A DNA stretch of 61,820 bases, counting the filler, from Choristocarpus tenellus KU-1152 (lineage: Eukaryota; Protista; Phaeophyceae), in assembly GCA_964200185.2 (NCBI GenBank). It is 7 parts of 7 records of this genome, joined end to end, with 100 filler letters (N's around TTAATTAATTAA, not from the genome) between each part and the next. Parts side by side here need not be neighbours in the genome. Positions count along the whole stretch, not along the records: positions 1 to 8,920 come from CAXNAD020004198.1; 6 more parts are not named here. One strand, 5' to 3'. Below the pieces are notes generated by a model. The model saw only the letters and a list, made by a program, of their open reading frames with translations. It did not search any database and was not told where the DNA came from. Shown here piece by piece: positions 477 to 42,824 of the stretch. Position 1 is the first letter of the stretch. The number at the start of each line of letters is the position of its first letter. The translations under genes were made by a program, and so were the position numbers.

Positions 477-1390
477 CTGGGGAGAGAAATATATCAAGTT
501 GTGGACTTCGAAAGTGCGTTGAAACTGTAGTGATGACGTCCTCACCATTCACACCTATCTATACCTGCGGTATCGCGGGAAATCTCTACTACACACAAAT
601 CAACATGAACGATAATGTCATTTTTGTACACCGACGCCTCCCAATATGTTTAATATTTGGTGAGTGGTGTGGAAGGGACATCGACAGGGCAACAGGTTTC
701 ACAGTATCGGGCAAGACAGGGCACTGTCAGCCACAAGGTGAGGATGAGCGGGAGGAGTTGCCGAAGGTTCGGTGTCGTTAGACGTGCGAAGTAGTTCGGT
801 TATGTTAGTTGCAAGGCCTTGTTCATCAAGGATTGATTGGTTCAGAGTACTGTTTGTTTTGAACAACCTGGCTATTTGAGTTCTTGGCTATCTTCTGAGC
901 TTGTCTTGTCAGGGTCCGTGACTGAGTAGCTGATGATGATGGGCAGTATATTATGACCTATGGAATCCTCGCTATTGTGATGCCTGAATTCCCTTTGTCT
1001 CCATCCTGGCAGGTACCATGGCCCCCCAGGAGTATAAGGAGGCAGAGCAGGTAAGGGGCAGACCCACGGCTATAAAGAGAAAGCAGGATGTACCATAGTA
1101 GTCGTTTAATCTGTATCATGGGTGATGGCAATGCTGTACTTCTCTCTGTTAGTAGTAAAGTGTAAATGAGTAATAGTGACTCGTGAAAGTGGGGGCTTGG
1201 TGCACGCATCATCGACAGATCCTCTCAATGGCGATTGCATTGTCCCTAAATGCCATACAGGATATCGAACATCGTGTTTATTTGCCTGCTACCTCGAGAC
1301 TGAGATACTTCGTTGGGTCACTTTTCTTCTTTGTGCCCCGTTCGTCTTAAACCACCCTCTGCGTGAGTTTGCGTAGTTGTCGGAAAAAGC

Positions 1391-4300
1391 ATGTCAGTGA
1401 AAGTAATACTGGAGATAAACCTGATGATATCAAATTCTGTCTTCATATGCTCTGAACTTCATCTTTTCGTCCACCCTTCTTGCCTCGGACCGTTTGATTA
1501 CTCGCTTTGTTAACCACAGCACGAGAAGGCGTACCAGAAGCAGGATGCCGTCTTTATTGCCGCGAAGCGCGTGCTGGGCAAAAAGAGCTCTAAGGTTTGT
1601 AACCATGCTTGTCTCTAACCCCATAAAAGGTCTCCAACTTCATCCTCCACTACTGGGTACTGATTTTGATTCTCACATTCTTTGTTGTGTATTGAGCTAC
1701 CAACATGTGATAGATAATGCCGTTGTTGAATCAAACGTTATCACTGCGGTTTGTAATGATAAACAATAAGAGGAACCATGTGGGTCCTTGTTAAGAATTT
1801 TTTTTAGGAGCTTTGTTTTAAAATGGCGAGTCTTCTTTGCTTGTATATTTTAGTCTTGTGTAATATACTAGGTGCGTCCTTCCCTTCCCCCTTACTTCCA
1901 CCCTGACAAAACCTCAATTTACAATATTTCTCGTGGGAAGAGATCCTGGTCTGACCGTGATGAATGAAGTAAATGGACTAGAGTTTCTGACCAGCAGCAG
2001 GTTTTAAGAAACCAAACCTTTTCGTTAGAGTCATACCATAAAAAGATTGAAAGACAATTGTGTGTTGTGGTCGTGAATGTGGAAGAAATTGACCCTCTTG
2101 ACTTAATTTTTTATTCCAGCAGCAAGCAACATGTACAGAAGCTATTCATTTCTTGTATTTCTTGATATTCAATTGTCAATGCTAGAAGTTATTGTACTAA
2201 TGGTCTGACAGTGATGAAGTAAATGGACTAGAGTTTCTGATTAGCAACATGCTACTGACGAGACAACCCTTTGCTGTCTGAGTCATACCAATGAGCAATT
2301 GTATTAAAGTATCAATGCTAGAAAAAGTTATTGTACTCAAGGTGTGACATTGATGAATGAAGTAAATGGACTAGAGTTTCTGATTAGCAACATGCTACTG
2401 ACGAGACACACCCTTGGCTGTCTGAGTCATACCAATGAGCAATCGTATTAAAGTGTCAATACTAGAAGAAGTTATTGTACTCAAGGTGTGACATTGATGA
2501 ATGAAGTAAATGGACTAGAGTTTCTGATTAGCAACATGCTACTGACGAGACAACCCTTGGCTGTCTGAGTCATACCAATGAGCAATCGTATTAAAGTGTC
2601 AATGCTAGAAGAAGTTATTGTACTCAAGGTGTGACATTGATGAATGAAGTAAATGGACTAGAGTTTCTGATTAGCAACATGCTACTGATGAGACACACCC
2701 TTGGCTGTCTGATTCATACCAATCAGTGCTTTTCTAAGGTAGGACTACATATATTTTCAATATATGTAAAGATTGATTTGCTTGTGCTTTCTAATTCTTT
2801 GCAAGGTGATCATAACAAATAGAGTCATTACTGTTGCATCAGGAGGTTGAGGCCTGATCTATCGATAGGAGAAAAGTTGTAGCGCATACTTGAGCTACAC
2901 TAAACCGGCATAAGAATCAAAATGCTCGAAATGGAGTTTAACAGCCTCTGCTCGTAAAACAGGGTATTCAGGGCATGATGCTTCTTTTGCCTTGGTGTGT
3001 TCACTGTGCCCCTATTGTAGTGATCTTACAAAAAAGAGCTCATGAAAGTGAGAGTTTGTTAGAGTGTCAACTTTTTTGAGAAAGATCTGAGGGTGATGTT
3101 AGGTGATCTGGCAATGATGAATAATGTAATTATGTTTCTATGTCTAGCTCAAGATGTTGACTATGGTGAGTAAAGTATTTGACTCTAGAGGTTCTGATTG
3201 AGAGGATGTTTTTTTGGAATAATTTAGTAGTGCCACGGTAGTTTATTTTTATTTTTTTGTAGCTCATGATTTCTCTGTGTTCTATCTGTTTTCAGTGTGC
3301 TCACATAAGGTTCAGGGTAAGTTTGTAAGTGCCTTGACCTGTCTCTTTGTACTTAATGTTGTGGTGCTATGCTCAGGGCTTGCGGTATGTGAAGAACATT
3401 GGCCTTGGTTTCAAGACCCCCAAGTCTGCAAAGGAGGGTACCTACGTTGACAAGAAGTGTCCTTTCACTGGCAATGTGTCCATCCGTGGCCGCATTCTCA
3501 AGGTATGCACTGTGCACTGCTGCAGGAGAGGGCATGACAAAGTTTAAATGATTACAGTTGTTAAAATAGAACATACATATATATATATATCCTTACAGCT
3601 AGATGATGTATAATGTATGACAAGGAACTGTTCCATATTGGGGTTTGTGTTTAGCTGAATCAATCATCCTTGAATTGTGTTTGTTGGTGAGAATACATAC
3701 AACACGCCAGATTGTTCTTGTTGCTGCCTTTGTTGGACATATCACTGTACTGCGTGAAAGCCAATTTATTGTCAATGTTGGCCAGTAAGCAATTCCGGGC
3801 AAGTGAAAGTATTCTCTTGGTATTTTTGTGTTGCCCTGTTGTGGAGGCTTGTCATGTGTCAAGAACAGGCATTTCTTGTGGTGCAACTGTAGATTCGGGT
3901 GTTTTCAACTTCTTTTTTTTTTGTCCTCCATTCCTCTTTGTAAAGGTTTATTTTATGCTGTGGAGATATTTAGGCGTGCATCTCTATAGCTTTGTCCATG
4001 CGTATGATGTCATTAGCAACCCCTGTAAGATCTTGAATAATTTGTTCTGCACCCTCACCTTCTTATTTGATGCCAATTGCGCACCCTCTTGACTTCCAAC
4101 TTAGGGTCTGGTCATCTCCGCAGGCAAGATGCGTAACACGATTGTTATCCGCCGTGACTACCTTCACTTTGTTTCAAAGTATCGTCGGTGAGTTTTTGTA
4201 CCGTAGTAGTGGCATGTAGTGCAGCATTGGTGCTGTTTTTGTTTAGATGGTATAGTGTATACAAGGGAAATTTCTTTGTGCAGCAGAATTGGCGAGAAGT

Positions 4301-5432
4301 TGATTTGAGGTGTGCATCGCACTTTTTTCTGGTTTTGTGTTGTCCGAGAGGCTCATAGTGATGATTGTCAAGTAGGTACTGTGGTTGTGTTGATTTTAGA
4401 GCGTGTTAGAATATTTGATGTGTTGTGCTGGTAGTTGTGGTCATTGGATGGTTTCTGCTTGGGATAATTCATGGTGTTGTAGCATGAGATTGGATTATAG
4501 AAAGGATTAAGATGGAAGTAAATAGTGACTATGATAGAAGTCAGTGAGAGCATGATAAATCAAGATTGCATGTTCAGTGGTTAAAGTTGTGCTATCATAT
4601 CGACCAGCTAATCTGTTGATATGTAGCTGGTGTCAACATCAACAGAGTATTGAAATTTTCCTTCTATTTATCCCATGTAATCAAGGAGAGAATATTGTGC
4701 ATTGTATGATACATCTTTTTAAGGGGCAGTAGTACAATCCGAATGTGCCCATTTCTGAGTTGGATTTTTTGTGTTTCATTGAATGACATGATTCAACGCA
4801 ATAAAAAACATTTGCTGAAGTTGGCGTCCTACCTCTGCTCCTCTGATGTCATGACTGCCTACCTTTCCTTCCTGCTGTCTCTGTGTGCTTCTGGACTACC
4901 TGTGGGCTGTACGTATGTATGGTGCATCAGGTTTGAGAAGCGTCATAAGAACATGACGGTGCACTGCTCTCCCTGCTGGCAGAACGTGAAGGAGGGGGAC
5001 ATTGTTACCATTGGACAGTGCCGACCACTCTCCAAGACTGTCCGGTTCAATGTCCTTGAGCACCAACCTTGTGTCAACACGGTAAGTTGTTTATACCTTC
5101 AAGTTGAGGACAGGAAAATAACTCTTTCTGGTCTTGTTTGTGTGAGATTCCGTGAGTTGTGGCAGAGAGGGGGGAAGGTAAAAATTGAAGACTTGAATGA
5201 TTGTTGGATTTTTTGTTGTTAGATATTGTTGTATCTCACCTATGTTTTTAGTATTTGGTTCCTCTTCTGTGTTGGAGATTGTCTTGAATTGTTTGAAGAC
5301 AGGATCCCTTTGTGCACTTTGTCCTTGCTGTGCTGTTGTTGACCATTCCAAATATCCTCTTTTTGTTCATTTTGTATATTTCCACTCATTGGTCAGGCTA
5401 TTGCGGTCAAGAAGCAGTTCCGGATGTTCTAA
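1391..5432 (+). CDS. RPS11: 40S ribosomal protein S11 (uS17), spliced
   Basis: Exons 1520-1594 ([25 protein letters not shown]), 3377-3502 ([15 protein letters not shown]...[18 protein letters not shown]), 4105-4187 ([28 protein letters not shown]), 4931-5081 ([15 protein letters not shown]...[15 protein letters not shown]) and 5397-5432 ([11 protein letters not shown]). All junctions are GT-AG and in phase. The start exon is uncertain; the candidate is ATG at 1391 with a donor at 1397 or 1403. Confidence 0.97.
1957..2030 (+). ncRNA. Box C/D snoRNA copy 1 (5' half intact, 3' half diverged)
   Basis: Box C GTGATGA at 1957-1963, guide GGACTAGAGT and D' CTGA at 1987-1990. C', the second guide and box D are degenerate. 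Confidence 0.6.
2211..2281 (+). ncRNA. Box C/D snoRNA copy 2 (dual guide, LSU rRNA)
   Basis: C GTGATGA 2211, D' CTGA 2237-2240, internal stem TAGCA-aca-TGCTA, C' TGACGA 2256-2261, D CTGA 2278-2281, terminal TGAC/GTCA stem. One substitution in the D guide (CCCTTTGCTGT). Confidence 0.85.
2350..2425 (+). ncRNA. Box C/D snoRNA copy 3 (dual guide, LSU rRNA)
   Basis: C TGATGA 2351-2356, D' 2380-2383, C' TGACGA, D 2422-2425. Guides GGACTAGAGT (antisense to LSU ACUCUAGUCC) and CCCTTGGCTGT (antisense to LSU ACAGCCAAGGG). Confidence 0.9.
2494..2568 (+). ncRNA. Box C/D snoRNA copy 4 (dual guide, LSU rRNA)
   Basis: C TGATGA 2495-2500, D' 2524-2527, C' TGACGA, D 2565-2568. Both guides intact; terminal stem GTGAC/GTCAT. 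Confidence 0.9.
2637..2712 (+). ncRNA. Box C/D snoRNA copy 5 (dual guide, LSU rRNA)
   Basis: C TGATGA 2638-2643, D' 2667-2670, perfect C' TGATGA 2686-2691, D 2709-2712. Both guides intact. Confidence 0.9.
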
Positions 5433-6567
5433 CGTGTGGAATCACAAGAGGCTGACCAAACAAAGTAAAAGTGATTTGAAGACCTCCCTCCATCCACTAT
5501 GTACGCCCAAGTCAAAGATAGGGCAGGTCGTGTGAAGGTTTTGCAGCAAGGTGGACACTGGCCACTTTGATGCGCCCTGCCTTATCACTTGTTGGATATG
5601 CTGGAAGATTCAGATAACGTAATGTGATGCTGTTGCCCTGTCAAACATGTGTGATGCTAATTTACAGCACAAAGTGTACTGCTTTCATTTGCACCTCCAG
5701 CTCCACAACAAAGATGTCGTCTTTCTGGAAAAGAGGATTTCTTAACTACATGGGACATGCTGGTGATATATGTGTATTTGACCTTTGAGCACACACTACT
5801 CCATATTGCTTGTTGCTCTTCTTTGTTTTTCATTTATGTAATTACAGGAGGCGTGGATGGTATTTTGTAAGTTTCTCCGTGTATCAATGGGAAGTGGTTG
5901 CATGAAGCTACCCAACATGTCTTCTAACCTGCCAGGCAGAGTGCGGCCTATCACATGACAGGTTTATGTTCTCTTGAAATAAAACGGTGCAACTGTTGAT
6001 CGTTGTGAAAATGAGAAATGGCTACACTTTTTGTTTTGGGATAAAAATCAAGTTACTTTGACGTCCGTCCGTCGTCCTGTATCTGCCTTAAAGGGCTGTT
6101 TATTCTTTTCCCGGACGAATTTTTTCATGAGAGAAGAACAGTCCTGATCCCCAATGTCTTATCTGTCTGTGTGCAACCTTAAACTCTTTGTTATTGTAGC
6201 TCCACTGTTACCCCCAAAGAGTTAATCAGACAGCAGTCCGCCAGTCATCATCGAGCTTAGTCAAGAACACACGCTCTCGTCGTGGTCGCAACCCCTCTTT
6301 GATTTTTTGTTCCGCAGTGATTGTCTGGTCCATTCCATCAAGCGTGAGTCCCCCAACTTCATCGTTCGACTTGTGTGTAACTTACGGCCGAAAGTTTGAG
6401 ACCGCACCACGATATTCGGGATGTCCCTCTACAGAGAGGCTTCCGCAGCAATTGTGCAGAGTTCTTCGTGGACAATCTACATTATAGTGAGCTACGTGCG
6501 AAGGTTAAGTTCCGAAAGCCTCGCACAGAATAACTTAAACAGTCACGTTCATTATAGCATCACAGGT

Positions 6568-6868
6568 CTTGATTAATTTCGAGGCGATGTAAGGCGACCT
6601 GATTGACGAGCATATTATCAAATTAAAGTGAGATCATAAGCAATCGATTGGGGCAAAGAAATCTGGTCGAAAAAAAGAAACTTTGATCTGATTTTCAGCG
6701 ATTTTCATTTTCTTGGCAATTCAACCGAGCCCTTCGGAATTTCCTAACACAAAGTAGTTTGCGACCAGATTTCTTTCTGGCAATCGTATGGCATTTTTTG
6801 GTCTCAGTTTTAATTTGATATGCTGGCCACCGATCAGGACGGCTTGCATCACCTCGAAATTAATCAAG
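6568..6868. repeat. Long imperfect inverted repeat (foldback), arms about 105-110 bp
   Basis: cttgattaatttcgaggcgatgtaag... from 6568 is the near reverse complement of ...cttgcatcacctcgaaattaatcaag ending at 6868. Pairing continues inward through tatcaaattaaa/tttaatttgata and aaagaaatctggtcg/cgaccagatttcttt. Confidence 0.85.
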
Positions 6869-8920
6869 GTCGTTCTTATCCTAGAGGCGTCTGCCAACAC
6901 CATACGCTTACATGGTGTTAAAAAGTTTGTGGAACATGTGATAACGGCATTTTCGTAGGATTTGGGAATCTACAAAAAAAGTATGCAATGTGTGTAATTT
7001 TTTTCAATATTGGAGCCTTGTAATTACTTCGATTGATTTAGTGTGCTCGGGAAGTTTCCCGCTTCGATTCATTGGGGATGGTTAGAGAAGGTTGTTTACG
7101 GAATAAGTCCATGTGACAGTTTGGGATGAGGAGGAAGAGTAGAGTAGGCATTCCTCATCATTGGTATGATAGGTTGATTGAAATACTAAATAGTGACATA
7201 ACCCACACAATATTATTACTCCTGTTAAAAACTTTGGTTAAATGGCAGATGAGAGCATAGTAGCTTTATCTATACACATAAATCATACTATCCGTTGATT
7301 CAATACAGTAAAAAGCGAAAATGTACCTGGTCAGTGCTTCCCACCCGCCTATGCCTACAGTTGGTACTTTCTCTATCCAGCGTAAGTTCGAGTGTGTGTG
7401 GATGAGGATAAACCCCGATTCGGGAAGAGTTTTTGTGACTTTGTACTACTGACGTACGAGAGGAGGAAGAACCTCATCGGATTTTGACAAGATTTTTTGG
7501 GGTAGCCTCGTTACTGTTGTATGGAAGGAAGACCCCACAAGAATATTGAAAGTCAGATAATCCTACTTTCAATACTATAGTCTGTCCTACAAACGTTGGA
7601 ACTAATAATATTGCTGAACACAGCAAGGAATTATGTAGTGTGTCCGTTGAACACCCTTCTAAACCCAACTTGAATTTCACAGACTGTCTTTGCAAACGAA
7701 ACAATCATTTAGTTACGACCCTAGCTTCATGCGATGTATATAGATCGATTGTTGTTCATGAAACACTCGGACTATATATTATCCCAAAGTTCAACTTCGT
7801 GATGACCGTTGTGTTACCCCCTACATCCATATATTGCTGATCTGAGTATTGTTGCTGTTGTTGATAGTTGTCTGGCAGCGTTTAATGTCAGTCAGAGGTG
7901 TTGGCATGGATAGAGAACTATTTATCGTAGTCTGGGAAAACCCCTATCCCTGGGTAATGAACAGGATTGGAAGTGTAGAGCGTTATGATGGTGGTATTTA
8001 TCGATAGCAGTACAATACTATGGATGCTTCCCTAGGTCCTCATACTGTGGTGTAGACCTAAGAATGGTTGGAGGCATAGGAGGGGAGAGGTGTAGTGTAA
8101 CTGGTAGTAATAATAGTAAATAGATGATAGAAAAATATCTTTCACACTTACAACAACTGTTACTTTTCCAGGGGTTATTGTTCTGATATTGAATTGGCTT
8201 TACATCGGGTTCTTTCATAAAACATATCCAAAGTGTCCGATGGCACAATAATATATATAAATATGATCAAACAGTTTCTTGCTTTAGTCATAAAATGCCA
8301 CATAGCTTACAGTATCCCTCAAACTTACGGAGTATACACTATGAACAGGTATGTTTGACGAACGGATTACATGTCCCACCCTGAAATATATACTAAATAT
8401 ATTTTTGGCAAAACAATCACCTTTGATTGGATATAACTGGGGTCATTGGAAGCAGTGACTGAGCAAGCTGTGTTCCCTCCCTCACCACCAATGCTTTTGG
8501 CTCAGTTTGATCAACAATACATTTTGTCTTTATTCTTACAGAGCTCTTGTAGCTACTATCCTTGTTGTGTCTATGTTCCAGTTTCAGTGTTTAGATATAT
8601 AGATGAGGAATCGCATCATAGCACAACAGTATCTAGTGCCTCTGTCCACAGATCGGAACAGTGCAATCACAGTGGCACTACTTCTTCCCATCTCATTTAA
8701 ATAAAGTTGGTCGTAATCCAACACTCTGCCTTTACTCAATGCGCATTACCCATACAAAGGTAGATACACCCACCCAGTTTCCTAATAAGCAAAAGGATCC
8801 ACTTGTTCTAGTTGTATTGATGCACAGAAAGACAGGGGGGGGGGGGGGGGGGGAGGGAAAAAAACAGGCAGCCATCATGCAGACATACATGCGGATATAC
8901 ATGCACATCCTACACCACGC

Positions 8921-39200: not shown

Positions 39201-39945
39201 CACGAACTACATCTACTTCTGTTGATCAAACCTCATGCCTGTTGTTGCCTCTACCCCAATCTATACCTCACCATTTGAGTCTTTTCCTTGGCCCTCAACT
39301 GTATTGGTGAATCTTGACCTCGCTTCCCTCCTGGGTCCTCCTGCTCCAAGTCGAAATCCTTAAACCCACTCTCTGTTTTGCACCATTATGTACCACCATT
39401 CAGGAGATCTTCCCTCAGAGTTCTGCCCAGCTTTCAGTGACCCGCATAGCCGAGGCTTTCTCCAGTGCCAAGCTTCCTGTGCGATCCATATTCAGAGCCT
39501 CTGACCCTGCCATGATGGTGAGGGATAGATAATTTTCCACTGCTGTTATGAAACTGATCTTGTGCCCACAAGGTACATCCATCCACCACTTGTGATACTT
39601 TTCCGGGGATGAATCACTGTTGTAGCAGTGGCAATGGGAAATAGGAGTGACTACCAGGATCTTTTTTTTCTTTTTTTTGAAGACAGTGTTTAGATACTGT
39701 ATTCCTCCAGTACATGTTCTTAAAACATTAACGTAAATGTTAAGAATTTTGAAAATGTGTATGTTATGAAATGGTGTGGTTTGATCATTGATATTGGCAC
39801 TTTCTAACAAACGCAATAACCAAAATTAAATCAAAATCGCAGCATTAGATTTTGGCCCCCAAACGGAATCGCGCGCCCCCTCTAAGATACTTTGACTCCA
39901 AATATATTTCCACTTGAGAGTTTTCTCCTTAATGTAAAACAATGG

Positions 39946-39980
<35 letters not shown>

Positions 39981-41919
39981 CAATGCTTTTCATGTTTCGT
40001 ACCATTTGTAAAATCTGGTCGTTTTGGTCCTCCTCTCCAATATATATCATCAGTACAGTGGACATCGACCCAAAGGACTAAAGAGGGTAGGAGTTTTACC
40101 CTGTTTGTCCGTTTGGGGTTTCGCTTCCCAGGGTTTTTTTATGCCCTTGTTCGGTTTTCTGTGTGAACACAGTTGCCTACTCCGAAACATTTCATAGTAC
40201 GACTATGAAAGGTGTTTTCGGAGCAAGGATATTGACACTTGCTAATAAACACATTAGGCAAAACTCATCAGAATCGCATCATCGGGTTTATGGCTGAAAC
40301 GGACGTGGCCCTACCCTCTTAAATGCCGTGAGTCATTACTAAAACAAGTAAGGACCAATTTATCCGTATGATTAGGGATGCACTGTCTATCAACCTTTGT
40401 TGCAGCAATAATGACAGTAGTCATCCTCATTTGGGGTTGTCACAGATACCTTCAAGTGGTAGAGAGGAATAAGAGATAAACGCAAATTATAAGCATATAG
40501 ATAGCCTTGAAATCTTGCTGCTCCACAGGAACACACCACAAGGAGGGTAACTGCTCAAGACTCTTAGACAGCACCCTAGCCTTGTTCCCTCACTTCCTAG
40601 ATGTCATACGATGCTTTGGAACGGCCAAAACAGTGTTAAAACCGATAGGAGAATGATACTGGGGGGGGGGGGAAGGAAGGAGTTGTTCTCGATTTGNNNN
40701 NNNNNNGTTATGGGTGGCTTTGGAACGGCGAAAGCAGTGTTAATACCGTAGGGGTATTTTTATGGGGGGGGGGGGGGAAGGAAGGAGTTGTTCTCGATTT
40801 GATTGTGCTTATCCATTCAAGAATGACGCATTACTGAAGTCTTATTTTATTTTACTCTGGGTTGGGGGGGGAGGAAAGAGCAAAACAATTTTGCAAGGCA
40901 CTAAAAAAGGAAAATAATTCAATGAGGGAGTGAGGAGGTTCCGGACCAGACAGCATAAAATCGTCACTCTAGAACGCTTCATGTAGCAACTCAACCCCTA
41001 TTCGGTAGGAGCACTCAGTGACTTCAATGATGTTCCACTGCTGGGACACAGGAAGTCATACCAAGGTTCCTTCAAGCTACAGTCAACAGCTATTAAACCT
41101 GTACTAGATAGTACATGCTCAAGGAGTCAATGGTGAAGAGTAGACATGAGTGCGTGTGTGATTTGCATCTTCTGCATGCTCGTCCAATGCTCCATGTCCA
41201 CACCCCTCTCTTACCAGCCTTTAACAAATGAAAGTTTTGTTGTCGGATGCTGGACCTTTTTCAGGGAGTTGTGCCTGAATCCAAGTTCCGTTGGTCCCTG
41301 AGGCAAGTGGAGAAGGAAGCCAACCAAGCACCCAGCAGCAAGGGTGGCTCTGCTTTGCTCTCTGATGAGGTACGATATGCCTTCAGCAGGGCAACAGCTA
41401 GAAACACTCCATAATACTTCAAAGCATTGAGCAGCAGGGACGCTTTGTTTGCTGGCATCCCACTTCATGCTTTGGAAACTGATGTACGCCCAGTACATTG
41501 GATTGTAGAAGTCAGCTTGTCAAAACGGACAATCAAACAACCCTGAGTAAAACCCCAACCTCATTTTATGAAACCCTATGAGCGTACAGAGAGGAAAAGA
41601 AGATACTGATCCTGGTTAATGGATGCAGACTCCCATCTGATCTAAGATGCCATGGAGATATCTGGGAGATCTATTTTCATCGATGCAGGTCTATGTCCAA
41701 GATACCTCCACAGTTGTTCCTCTCACTAATATATGCACTGCCTCAGCTGTGAACATCCTGTGCTCTGCCCTTCACCTCTCGGAAAACATCTTGCAGGAAG
41801 TGGACCGGATTGTAGACGAGTTCAGGGATGAGCAACGACAGGGACCCAAAGGGGAGAGCATGGTGTTCTACGATGACTTTGTTGATCATCTTGTCATTGG
41901 CTCACCAAGGTTTGAATGA
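36275..41919 (+). CDS. EFHC1/EFHC2 (Rib72-like) DM10 and EF-hand axonemal protein, 3' exons
   Basis: Exons 36275-36393 ([13 protein letters not shown]), 37339-37433 (KVLRFQAKL...[10 protein letters not shown]), 38087-38167 ([28 protein letters not shown]), 38501-38754 (GC donor; DEYTRKLLE), 39404-39517, 41265-41369 and 41797-41919 ([11 protein letters not shown]...*). Typical third DM10 domain followed by an EF-hand-like tail. Confidence 0.88.
40070..40328 (-). mobile_element. MITE family A, degenerate copy
   Basis: The reverse complement shares ccctgtttgtcc.tttgggg, ggatattgacactt and ccctaccctct with family A. A separate family A end lies near 39840-39898. Confidence 0.65.
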
Positions 41920-42824
41920 CTAGTGTCCCCCTCTGGCTGGCAGCATTTGCGGTTTCGTACGGTATTTCGTTTCTAGTTAAAATGGTTTGGTGTTTCTTGT
42001 GGGTTGACCTCGAGTTTATCCAACATTTGTCATGTGATGCTGTGATCTCTGCACCTCTCCAAAGTACATTGAAGATCTGCGTGAAATAACCCCAGCCCTA
42101 ACCCTAACCCTAACCCTAACTCCACGGTAGTATATACACTAACTAGCAAAACTATACATATCAATCAGCTCAGTAGATATTCCAGGTTGGCACCTAACAA
42201 TAGGTTCACGCATGGTTCAAAATTCAAGAGTGGTACCATCTAAGCAGAGGGTACCATTGACTTTTAAGAACTTCTGCGGCTGCCTGGGGGAATGTGTGTT
42301 TCGAGCACTAGGGAGGGCACTTTTGGCTAACCATACCTTCCTTCACTGGTCGTCTTCTTTTACAGTCCCACCCTCCTAAGATGGGGGTTAACTGTGTACT
42401 TTAGGCATGGGCATGGTGTACATTGCACAAGGTTCAAAAGGGTCAAATTTGACCCCCNNNNNNNNNNNNNNNNNNNNNNNNNNNNNNNNNNNNNNNNNNN
42501 NTTAATTAATTAANNNNNNNNNNNNNNNNNNNNNNNNNNNNNNNNNNNNNNNNNNNNCATCCTCAATGAAAAGCTCCATCCTCAAATTTTGAAATCGGCT
42601 GTTCTAACCCCTCAAATCTTGTGCAGTACTCACCTAGCCACAACTAAGCATTGCCACCACAACACACGTTTTCCACTTTTTGAGGTTTAGCAACAGTTAG
42701 GAGGGCACCCGTTTTGCCTTTCTGATATTCTTATAACGTGGTCCATCGAAGTCAAACGAATTTCCCTGAAGATATATAATGTAGACCAGATTTGAACCAC
42801 AGCATTCCTTTGAAAGAATTTGGT

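Follow-up and report, generated by a model that had tools for sequence, protein, structure and literature searches.

A predicted tandem array of snoZ157/snoR37-type box C/D snoRNA genes in an RPS11 intron of the brown alga Choristocarpus tenellus

Among the plant small nucleolar RNAs (snoRNAs) of the box C/D class, AtsnoR37-1 has been reported to carry two guides against the large subunit (LSU) ribosomal RNA (rRNA), the 5' guide directing Um2422 (yeast Um2421, human Um3925) and the 3' guide directing Cm2366 (human Cm3869) (PMC8583080). The same source labels the equivalent of human Cm3869 as AtU53/AtsnoR37 and lists the C site without a yeast equivalent. In humans, Um3925 is attributed to SNORD52 and Cm3869 to SNORD53/SNORD92 (PMC11550049). 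The Tetrahymena snoRNA TtnuCD15 was located by inspecting the genome near experimentally identified snoRNAs, and its expression has been shown by primer extension (PMC3273799). Intronic polycistronic snoRNA clusters with duplicated isoforms have been described in plants, Chlamydomonas and Ostreococcus (PMC7671301), and one snoZ157 match has been reported from a diatom genome (PMC11842555). In the present work, an array of predicted snoRNA genes carrying the same pair of guides as AtsnoR37-1 is described from the second intron of the ribosomal protein gene RPS11 (uS17) in Choristocarpus tenellus KU-1152 (Phaeophyceae; assembly GCA_964200185.2).

The window, that is, the whole stretch of DNA presented, comprises 61,820 nucleotides joined from seven parts of this genome. 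The first of these, contig CAXNAD020004198.1, was analysed whole (8920 bp), and the coordinates given for the locus are positions in that contig. Our overall reading, to which we assign a probability of roughly 0.8, is that intron 2 carries box C/D genes of the snoZ157/snoR37 type that were recently duplicated and that would be transcribed together, processed and used to guide two LSU methylations.

The snoRNA array and its predicted guides

An earlier note, made by reading this DNA alone, had described five copies of a snoRNA cassette, four of them in a repeat of about 143 bp. The repeat and four full copies were recovered as listed below, whereas the fifth copy (1948-2037) proved to be incomplete, scoring 33 bits against 47-56 for the others in the family model introduced below.

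2166-2723, plus strand: 143-bp tandem repeat, 3.9 units with 94% matches and a score of 969 (Tandem Repeats Finder)
1948-2037, plus strand: copy 0, half-decayed; RF00333 33.4 bits, E 8e-4; box C 1957-1963, 5' guide with box D' 1975-1990
2202-2289, plus strand: copy 1; RF00333 49.9 bits; box C 2211-2217 (GTGATGA), 5' guide with D' 2225-2240, box C' 2256-2261, 3' guide with box D 2267-2281
2341-2433, plus strand: copy 2; RF00333 50.1 bits; box C 2350-2356, 5' guide with D' 2368-2383, C' 2399-2404, 3' guide with D 2411-2425; 8-bp stem
2485-2576, plus strand: copy 3, the best; RF00333 55.8 bits, E 3.9e-10; box C 2494-2500, 5' guide with D' 2512-2527, C' 2543-2548, 3' guide with D 2554-2568; 8-bp stem
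2628-2720, plus strand: copy 4; RF00333 47.2 bits; box C 2637-2643, 5' guide with D' 2655-2670, C' 2686-2691 (TGATGA), 3' guide with D 2698-2712
2290-2340, plus strand: spacer between copies 1 and 2, 51 nt, with counterparts at 2434-2484 and 2577-2627

All five copies were placed by Rfam in RF00333 (snoZ157, Z157/R69/R10), a known dual-guide C/D family, with E values between 4e-10 and 8e-4 and with copy 3 alone above the family's gathering score of 55 bits; a search of this kind had been proposed in the earlier note. Throughout the 164-Mb assembly, this locus was the only one found for RF00333. The R69/R10 of the Rfam label must be kept apart from AtsnoR69Y and AtsnoR10, the targets of which are Cm2949 and Um2651 (PMC8583080). 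The model of the Tetrahymena snoRNA TtnuCD15 (RF02291) gave 34-45 bits on the array copies, all below its gathering score of 75, and the human SNORD53_SNORD92 model (RF00325), which has a cut-off of 46 bits, reached 26-27 bits in three copies, while the human SNORD52 model (RF00276) had no match at the array. The relation of the array to human SNORD52 and SNORD53/92 is one of functional equivalence of targets only. Judged from its sequence, the array is a box C/D snoRNA gene family of a single type, snoZ157, and is predicted to be functionally of the plant snoR37 type.

The repeat unit consists of a 51-nt spacer and an 88-93-nt snoRNA, and a repeat search found a 52-nt segment present five times, with start-to-start distances of 250, 143, 144 and 143 nt. 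The 16-nt motif formed by the 5' guide and box D' occurs exactly five times, always on the plus strand (from 1975, 2225, 2368, 2512 and 2655), and none of 200 shuffled sequences contained any match to it. The motif formed by the 3' guide and box D occurs four times, three of them exact and one carrying a G-to-T change (2267-2281), a count reached by none of 200 shuffles. In copies 1-4, the layout runs from box C (GTGATGA or TTGATGA) through the guide GGACTAGAG, box D' (CTGA), a 5-bp hairpin (TAGCA/TGCTA), box C' (TGACGA in copies 1-3, TGATGA in copy 4) and the guide CCCTTGGCTGT to box D (CTGA), with boxes C and D being those of the box C/D class. The 3' guide abuts box D directly, while the letters TTT separate the 5' guide from D'. 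The boxes, guides and internal hairpin had been described in this form in the earlier note, with a closing stem of 4 bp; the stem is in fact 8 bp long (GGTGTGAC/GTCATACC, with one G-U pair), so that the gene units measure 88-93 nt. The distance from box C through box D in copy 3 is 75 nt (2494-2568).

The copies differ in their state of preservation. The terminal stem is 8 bp long in copies 2 and 3; in copy 4 it has 7 bp, and in copies 0 and 1 a single mismatch divides it into 3+4 bp. In copy 1, a G-to-T change additionally lies in the 3' guide beside the target-pairing position, and in copy 4 a G-to-T change disrupts the stem pair adjoining box D. Copy 0 retains the terminal stem and is devoid of box C', its 3' guide is decayed, and TAGA stands at the place of box D. 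Of the five, copies 2 and 3 seem to be fully functional, copy 4 would have a weakened stem and copy 1 a mismatched 3' guide, and copy 0 may be at best a one-guide relic. Over the 43 positions of its 5' half (box C, guide and D'), copy 0 shows 3 differences from copy 2, its 3' half being far more diverged; this well-kept half would reflect either a refreshment by gene conversion or a retained one-guide function. The predicted free energies of the copies are not below those of shuffled sequences, and unremarkable free energy is normal for C/D snoRNAs, as their guides are unpaired. The structure predicted for the spacers, which have 92-98% mutual identity, is weak (z between about -0.3 and -0.7).

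A scan of the plus strand of the 8920-bp contig for box C, box D and stem yielded the array only, with no other box C/D genes. Complements of rRNA of 10 nt beside a CTGA were found in the contig at the 3' guides of the array and at one isolated position, 6688. Two further candidates were rejected. A C/D-like stretch at 3105-3200 (ATGATGA near 3113, CTGA near 3193 following GACTCTAGAGG) has a 3-bp stem, no 10-nt complement in three eukaryotic ribosomal DNAs (rDNAs) and no Rfam match. A possible sixth relic near 2117-2140, between copies 0 and 1, gave a local alignment score of 20, whereas shuffled sequences scored 16.2 +/- 2.5 and reached up to 26.

Searches of the assembly for LSU genes returned only plastid copies (two, on contig C1) and a short organellar, probably mitochondrial, fragment. 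As the nuclear LSU gene was not found in the assembly, the LSU of other eukaryotes was taken instead. The two target motifs were sought together in a prokaryotic genome collection, where at least 83 rDNA-like contigs carry both. Rfam identified three of these contigs (L146, L147 and L153), none of them human-looking, as eukaryotic rDNA (LSU scores 1318-3041 bits), and these served for guide pairing; the other rDNA-like contigs were viewed over a 91-nt motif context. Pairing with the three verified eukaryotic rDNAs involves 11 Watson-Crick pairs between the 3' guide and ACAGCCAAGGG, and 10 between the 5' guide and ACUCUAGUCC, the latter joined by G-U pairs at the ends. Both guides are thus complementary to LSU segments of universal conservation. 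On the LSU of other eukaryotes, complements of at least 10 nt are thus found upstream of both D and D', the fifth nucleotide defining the target in each case. This nucleotide lies opposite the C of ACAG[C]CAAGGG in the guide next to D and opposite the U of GAC[U]CUAG in the guide next to D', so that methylation is predicted for the U in GACUCUAG and the C in ACAGCCAAGGG.

The two target motifs are 46 nt apart in the same 65-nt span in nearly all of the rDNA-like contigs, at least 83 in number. In the plant-type L147, where the LSU starts at 5019 and the motifs lie at 7380-7444, the sites correspond to C2366 and U2422. In L153, a unit of the yeast type, the target U lies 975 nt before the 3' end, which would make it U2421 on the assumption that 25S rRNA is 3396 nt long. 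The guides of the array are predicted to select the same two LSU sites as AtsnoR37, and the targets that the earlier note had derived, GAC[U]CUAG and ACAG[C]CAAG, hold on these eukaryotic sequences. Its tentative statement that plant snoR37 joins both guides is borne out by the listing of AtsnoR37-1 (PMC8583080), and the human and yeast equivalents that it named (SNORD52, SNORD53, yeast Um2421) agree with published site lists (PMC8583080; PMC11550049).

Some observations were made alongside these rRNA searches. Contig C1 (about 120 kb, the largest of the assembly) is a red-type plastid genome, with two inverted LSU rRNA copies (39392-42138, minus strand; 116776-119522, plus strand) and rbcS at 103874-104170. 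Such a plastid speaks against a green plant and more probably for an ochrophyte, haptophyte or cryptophyte alga, or a red alga. Contig C10314 (L020) holds the 3' end of the small subunit rRNA gene, internal transcribed spacer 1 and 5.8S, followed by sequence that is not rDNA, and contig C3273 (L019) holds an isolated 5.8S. Two LSU-like matches in viral contigs were due to chance, neither being rRNA, and were discarded. Eukaryotic rDNA contigs are present in many bacterial assemblies of the genome collection; one of these contigs, L146, is a contaminant in a cyanobacterial metagenome-assembled genome and has a group I intron at 6003-6529 (Rfam, 59 bits) inside its eukaryotic LSU rDNA.

A metagenome scan using both guide-plus-box motifs as the query recovered the same cassette in at least 120 contigs, with 134 instances and 77 distinct sequences among the matches listed, where most contigs are single-copy. 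One contig, L116, has two copies 219 bp apart, and in the plant-like contigs L094 and L096 the snoRNA lies within mixed clusters with other snoRNAs. Across the 77 distinct homologues, the sequences flanking boxes C and D vary widely yet remain complementary, the stems covarying. Divergent flanks that still pair are the pattern expected of a real C/D family.

The host gene and the origin of the copies

Ribosomal-protein genes are classic snoRNA hosts. The RPS11 gene at this locus has six exons on the plus strand, separated by GT-AG introns. Its exons were translated one by one and each was then searched singly against Pfam, with the following result.

1018-1050, plus strand: RPS11 exon 1, ATG start, 11 codons in open frame, GT donor at 1051
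1520-1594, plus strand: exon 2, Pfam Ribosomal_S17_N profile positions 2-24, E 0.0015, with AG/GT bounds
1595-3376, plus strand: intron 2, phase 0, 1782 nt, GT at 1595 and AG at 3375-3376; host of the snoRNA array
3377-3502, plus strand: exon 3, Pfam Ribosomal_S17_N, E 3.5e-24
4105-4187, plus strand: exon 4, Pfam Ribosomal_S17 profile positions 1-26, E 6e-5
4931-5081, plus strand: exon 5, Pfam Ribosomal_S17 profile positions 28-68, E 5.8e-16
5397-5432, plus strand: exon 6 with stop codon, assigned from the frame, an AG acceptor and a C-terminus similar to that of metagenome contig L035

The bounds of intron 2 are those given in the earlier note. All snoRNA copies lie on the sense strand of the host within 1595-3376, flanked by RPS11 exons with Pfam support. 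Since more than one snoRNA gene lies in a single intron, in the orientation of the host, the array has the gene layout of an intronic polycistron. Upstream, an ATG-initiated frame of 62 codons on the minus strand (243-428) ends at a GT donor-like site and is without a Pfam match; a candidate first exon of a divergent, head-to-head neighbour gene, it lies about 590 bp from RPS11, ATG to ATG. Downstream of RPS11, an inverted repeat of 60 nt (6568-6627/6809-6868) is 80% complementary, its arms being 181 nt apart, and a second inverted pair (6645-6673/6758-6786) is nested within it. Together these repeats, at 6568-6868, look like a small foldback or miniature inverted-repeat transposable element (MITE)-like element.

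The comparison of RPS11 introns among relatives, which the earlier note had recommended, could be made with two of the metagenome contigs, L035 and L087. Their RPS11 is 74-83% identical to exons 3-5 of the C. tenellus gene, and exon 2 can be aligned with both as far as the same donor. Each has exactly one snoRNA copy, in an intron at the same codon boundary (phase 0) as intron 2:

L035, 1102-1343: snoRNA-bearing RPS11 intron, 242 nt
L087, 366-611: snoRNA-bearing RPS11 intron, about 240 nt

In both contigs, 75 nt separate the end of box D from the 3' splice site, the terminal stem is minimal or absent, and the differences between the two in the internal hairpin are paired changes. The three loci share the snoRNA, the host gene and the phase-0 intron position; in C. 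tenellus, however, the intron measures 1782 nt against about 240 nt, with four copies and a relic rather than one copy, 8-bp stems, and the end of the last box D 664 nt rather than 75 nt before the 3' splice site. In L035, runs of TTAGGG-like repeats were seen upstream of RPS11, at 240-300 and 660-690.

Copies 2-4 are mutually 97-99% identical, whereas the identity of copy 1 to these three is 90-94% and that of copy 0 to the remaining copies 76-79%. The identities of the spacers between units equal those of the snoRNAs. This pattern points to a stepwise, recent and local tandem duplication of a 143-bp segment, or to ongoing homogenisation. As the homologous intron of the relatives holds a single copy, the amplification would be lineage-specific, and as the units are 92-99% identical with their spacers included, it would be recent. 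The recent tandem duplication proposed in the earlier note thus finds support both in the spacers and in the related contigs.

The number of copies could be questioned on the ground that an assembler expanded or collapsed the repeat. The assembly is a short-read one, highly fragmented into 27,310 contigs, and the contig that carries the array has poly-G runs of 22-23 nt near both ends (50-71 and 8835-8857). These runs are probably sequencing or assembly artefacts, so that the contig ends are not to be trusted. Within the array, on the other hand, the units are regularly spaced and every one carries its own substitutions or indels in both snoRNA and spacer, which is unlike assembly stutter and makes an artefactual copy number very improbable. 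Variants that tell the copies apart include G or T at 2272, an additional C at 2409 and at 2696, and a T at 2689 and at 2714.

The presence of several copies could also be neutral. By this account, unequal crossing-over or replication slippage would have left copies 2 and 3 (one or two units) to supply the snoRNA, with the remainder being young duplicates in decay that have no role in dosage. The equal similarity of spacers and snoRNAs between units would be explained, as would the guide mismatch of copy 1, the stem mismatch of copy 4, the half gene lost from copy 0 and the sufficiency of one copy in the relatives. Less easily accommodated are the 16-nt 5' guide and D', which are unchanged in all five copies, the perfect 3' guide of three copies, and the finding that snoRNA families of plants and Chlamydomonas as a rule comprise several isoforms (PMC7671301). 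Neutral redundancy is considered unlikely on balance, though it is far from implausible.

Predicted processing of the array

In the reading preferred here, the array would be transcribed within the RPS11 pre-mRNA, and the core proteins Snu13/15.5K, Nop56, Nop58 and fibrillarin would assemble on each stem-closed C/D motif, with the terminal stem bringing boxes C and D together. The 51-nt spacers would then be cut by an endonuclease and the ends trimmed by exonucleases, as in plant-type polycistrons (PMC7671301; PMC3273799). The resulting RNAs of about 80-90 nt would direct fibrillarin-mediated 2'-O-methylation at both LSU sites. That the units would be released endonucleolytically, and that such an array may serve snoRNA dosage by tying it to ribosomal-protein transcription, had both been suggested in the earlier note.

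Several points weigh against this reading. Three of the four full copies score just below the RF00333 gathering score. The nuclear LSU of this organism was not found in the assembly by pattern and model searches, and complementarity was judged on that of other eukaryotes. The copy number is derived from a fragmented short-read assembly. The spacers are as well conserved as the snoRNAs and the array has no sign of selection on copy number; given this equal similarity, nothing can be inferred for or against such selection. Finally, no strong RNase III-type stem-loop is predicted in the array spacers.

The last of these points bears on another possible fate of the intron, in which the array is not resolved into single units. 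Once the intron has been spliced out and debranched, exonucleases would be halted at the outermost snoRNA-protein particles (snoRNPs), leaving a snoRNA-ended RNA of about 520 nt (2202-2720), or of about 770 nt when counted from copy 0. In mammals, introns with two snoRNAs can give snoRNA-ended long noncoding RNAs (sno-lncRNAs) by such a route (PMC11028025), and spacers without an obvious cleavage stem-loop would be in keeping with it. Against this, plant-type clusters, whether intronic or intergenic, are resolved into single units (PMC7671301; PMC3273799), and each unit of the array has its own 8-bp closing stem. Retention of the whole array in one long RNA is accordingly judged improbable, and release of individual snoRNAs remains the preferred reading.

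The comparison with L035 and L087 also allows a broader proposal, which is put forward tentatively and is held to be rather doubtful. The two states of this intron may capture a switch in the mode of biogenesis, from an ancestral stemless snoRNA 75 nt from the 3' splice site to a derived, stem-closed array more than 650 nt away. A distance of 75 nt resembles the vertebrate optimum for splicing-coupled snoRNP assembly. If such a switch took place, the array would need splicing-independent assembly and endonucleolytic release, or else would yield a snoRNA-ended long RNA, and this would apply to a red-plastid algal lineage in which snoRNA processing has not been described.

Comparison with known systems

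The literature searched yielded no dedicated description of snoRNA gene organisation in stramenopile or red-plastid algae. The array belongs to an already known kind, here in a little-studied lineage, and it presents no new mechanism; knowledge of snoRNA function is unchanged by it. Its value lies in part in a clean annotation of the RPS11 host gene and its snoRNA family for a draft algal genome that is otherwise poorly annotated. In addition, the single-copy relative and the four-copy array in the same intron constitute a small natural experiment on snoRNA multiplication and the changing processing needs that go with it.

The closest counterpart is the RF00333/AtsnoR37 type, with which the array shares the same two guides in the same order (5'/D' to the U site, 3'/D to the C site), the same boxes, a terminal stem and, between D' and C', an internal hairpin. 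At 5 bp, this hairpin is shorter in the array than in the RF00333 family, and the host of the array has a red-type plastid, whereas that of AtsnoR37 is a green plant. In the plant contigs L094 and L096, the snoRNA is part of mixed polycistrons, while the array consists of repeats of the same snoRNA within an RPS11 intron. With the green-lineage clusters, the array has in common several snoRNA genes in one intron of a protein gene, a presumed polycistronic precursor and isoforms arising through local duplication. Human SNORD52 and SNORD53/92 and yeast snR78 are directed to the same target nucleotides, the human guides being on separate snoRNAs; the predicted array RNA joins the guide of human SNORD52 and yeast snR78 with that of human SNORD53. 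In Tetrahymena TtnuCD15, as in the array, both guides are found in one RNA. The combined SNORD52-plus-SNORD53 guide, known from plants and ciliates, thus extends to a red-plastid alga and to many uncultured eukaryotes, and its spread across these lineages fits an ancient origin of the two-guide arrangement.

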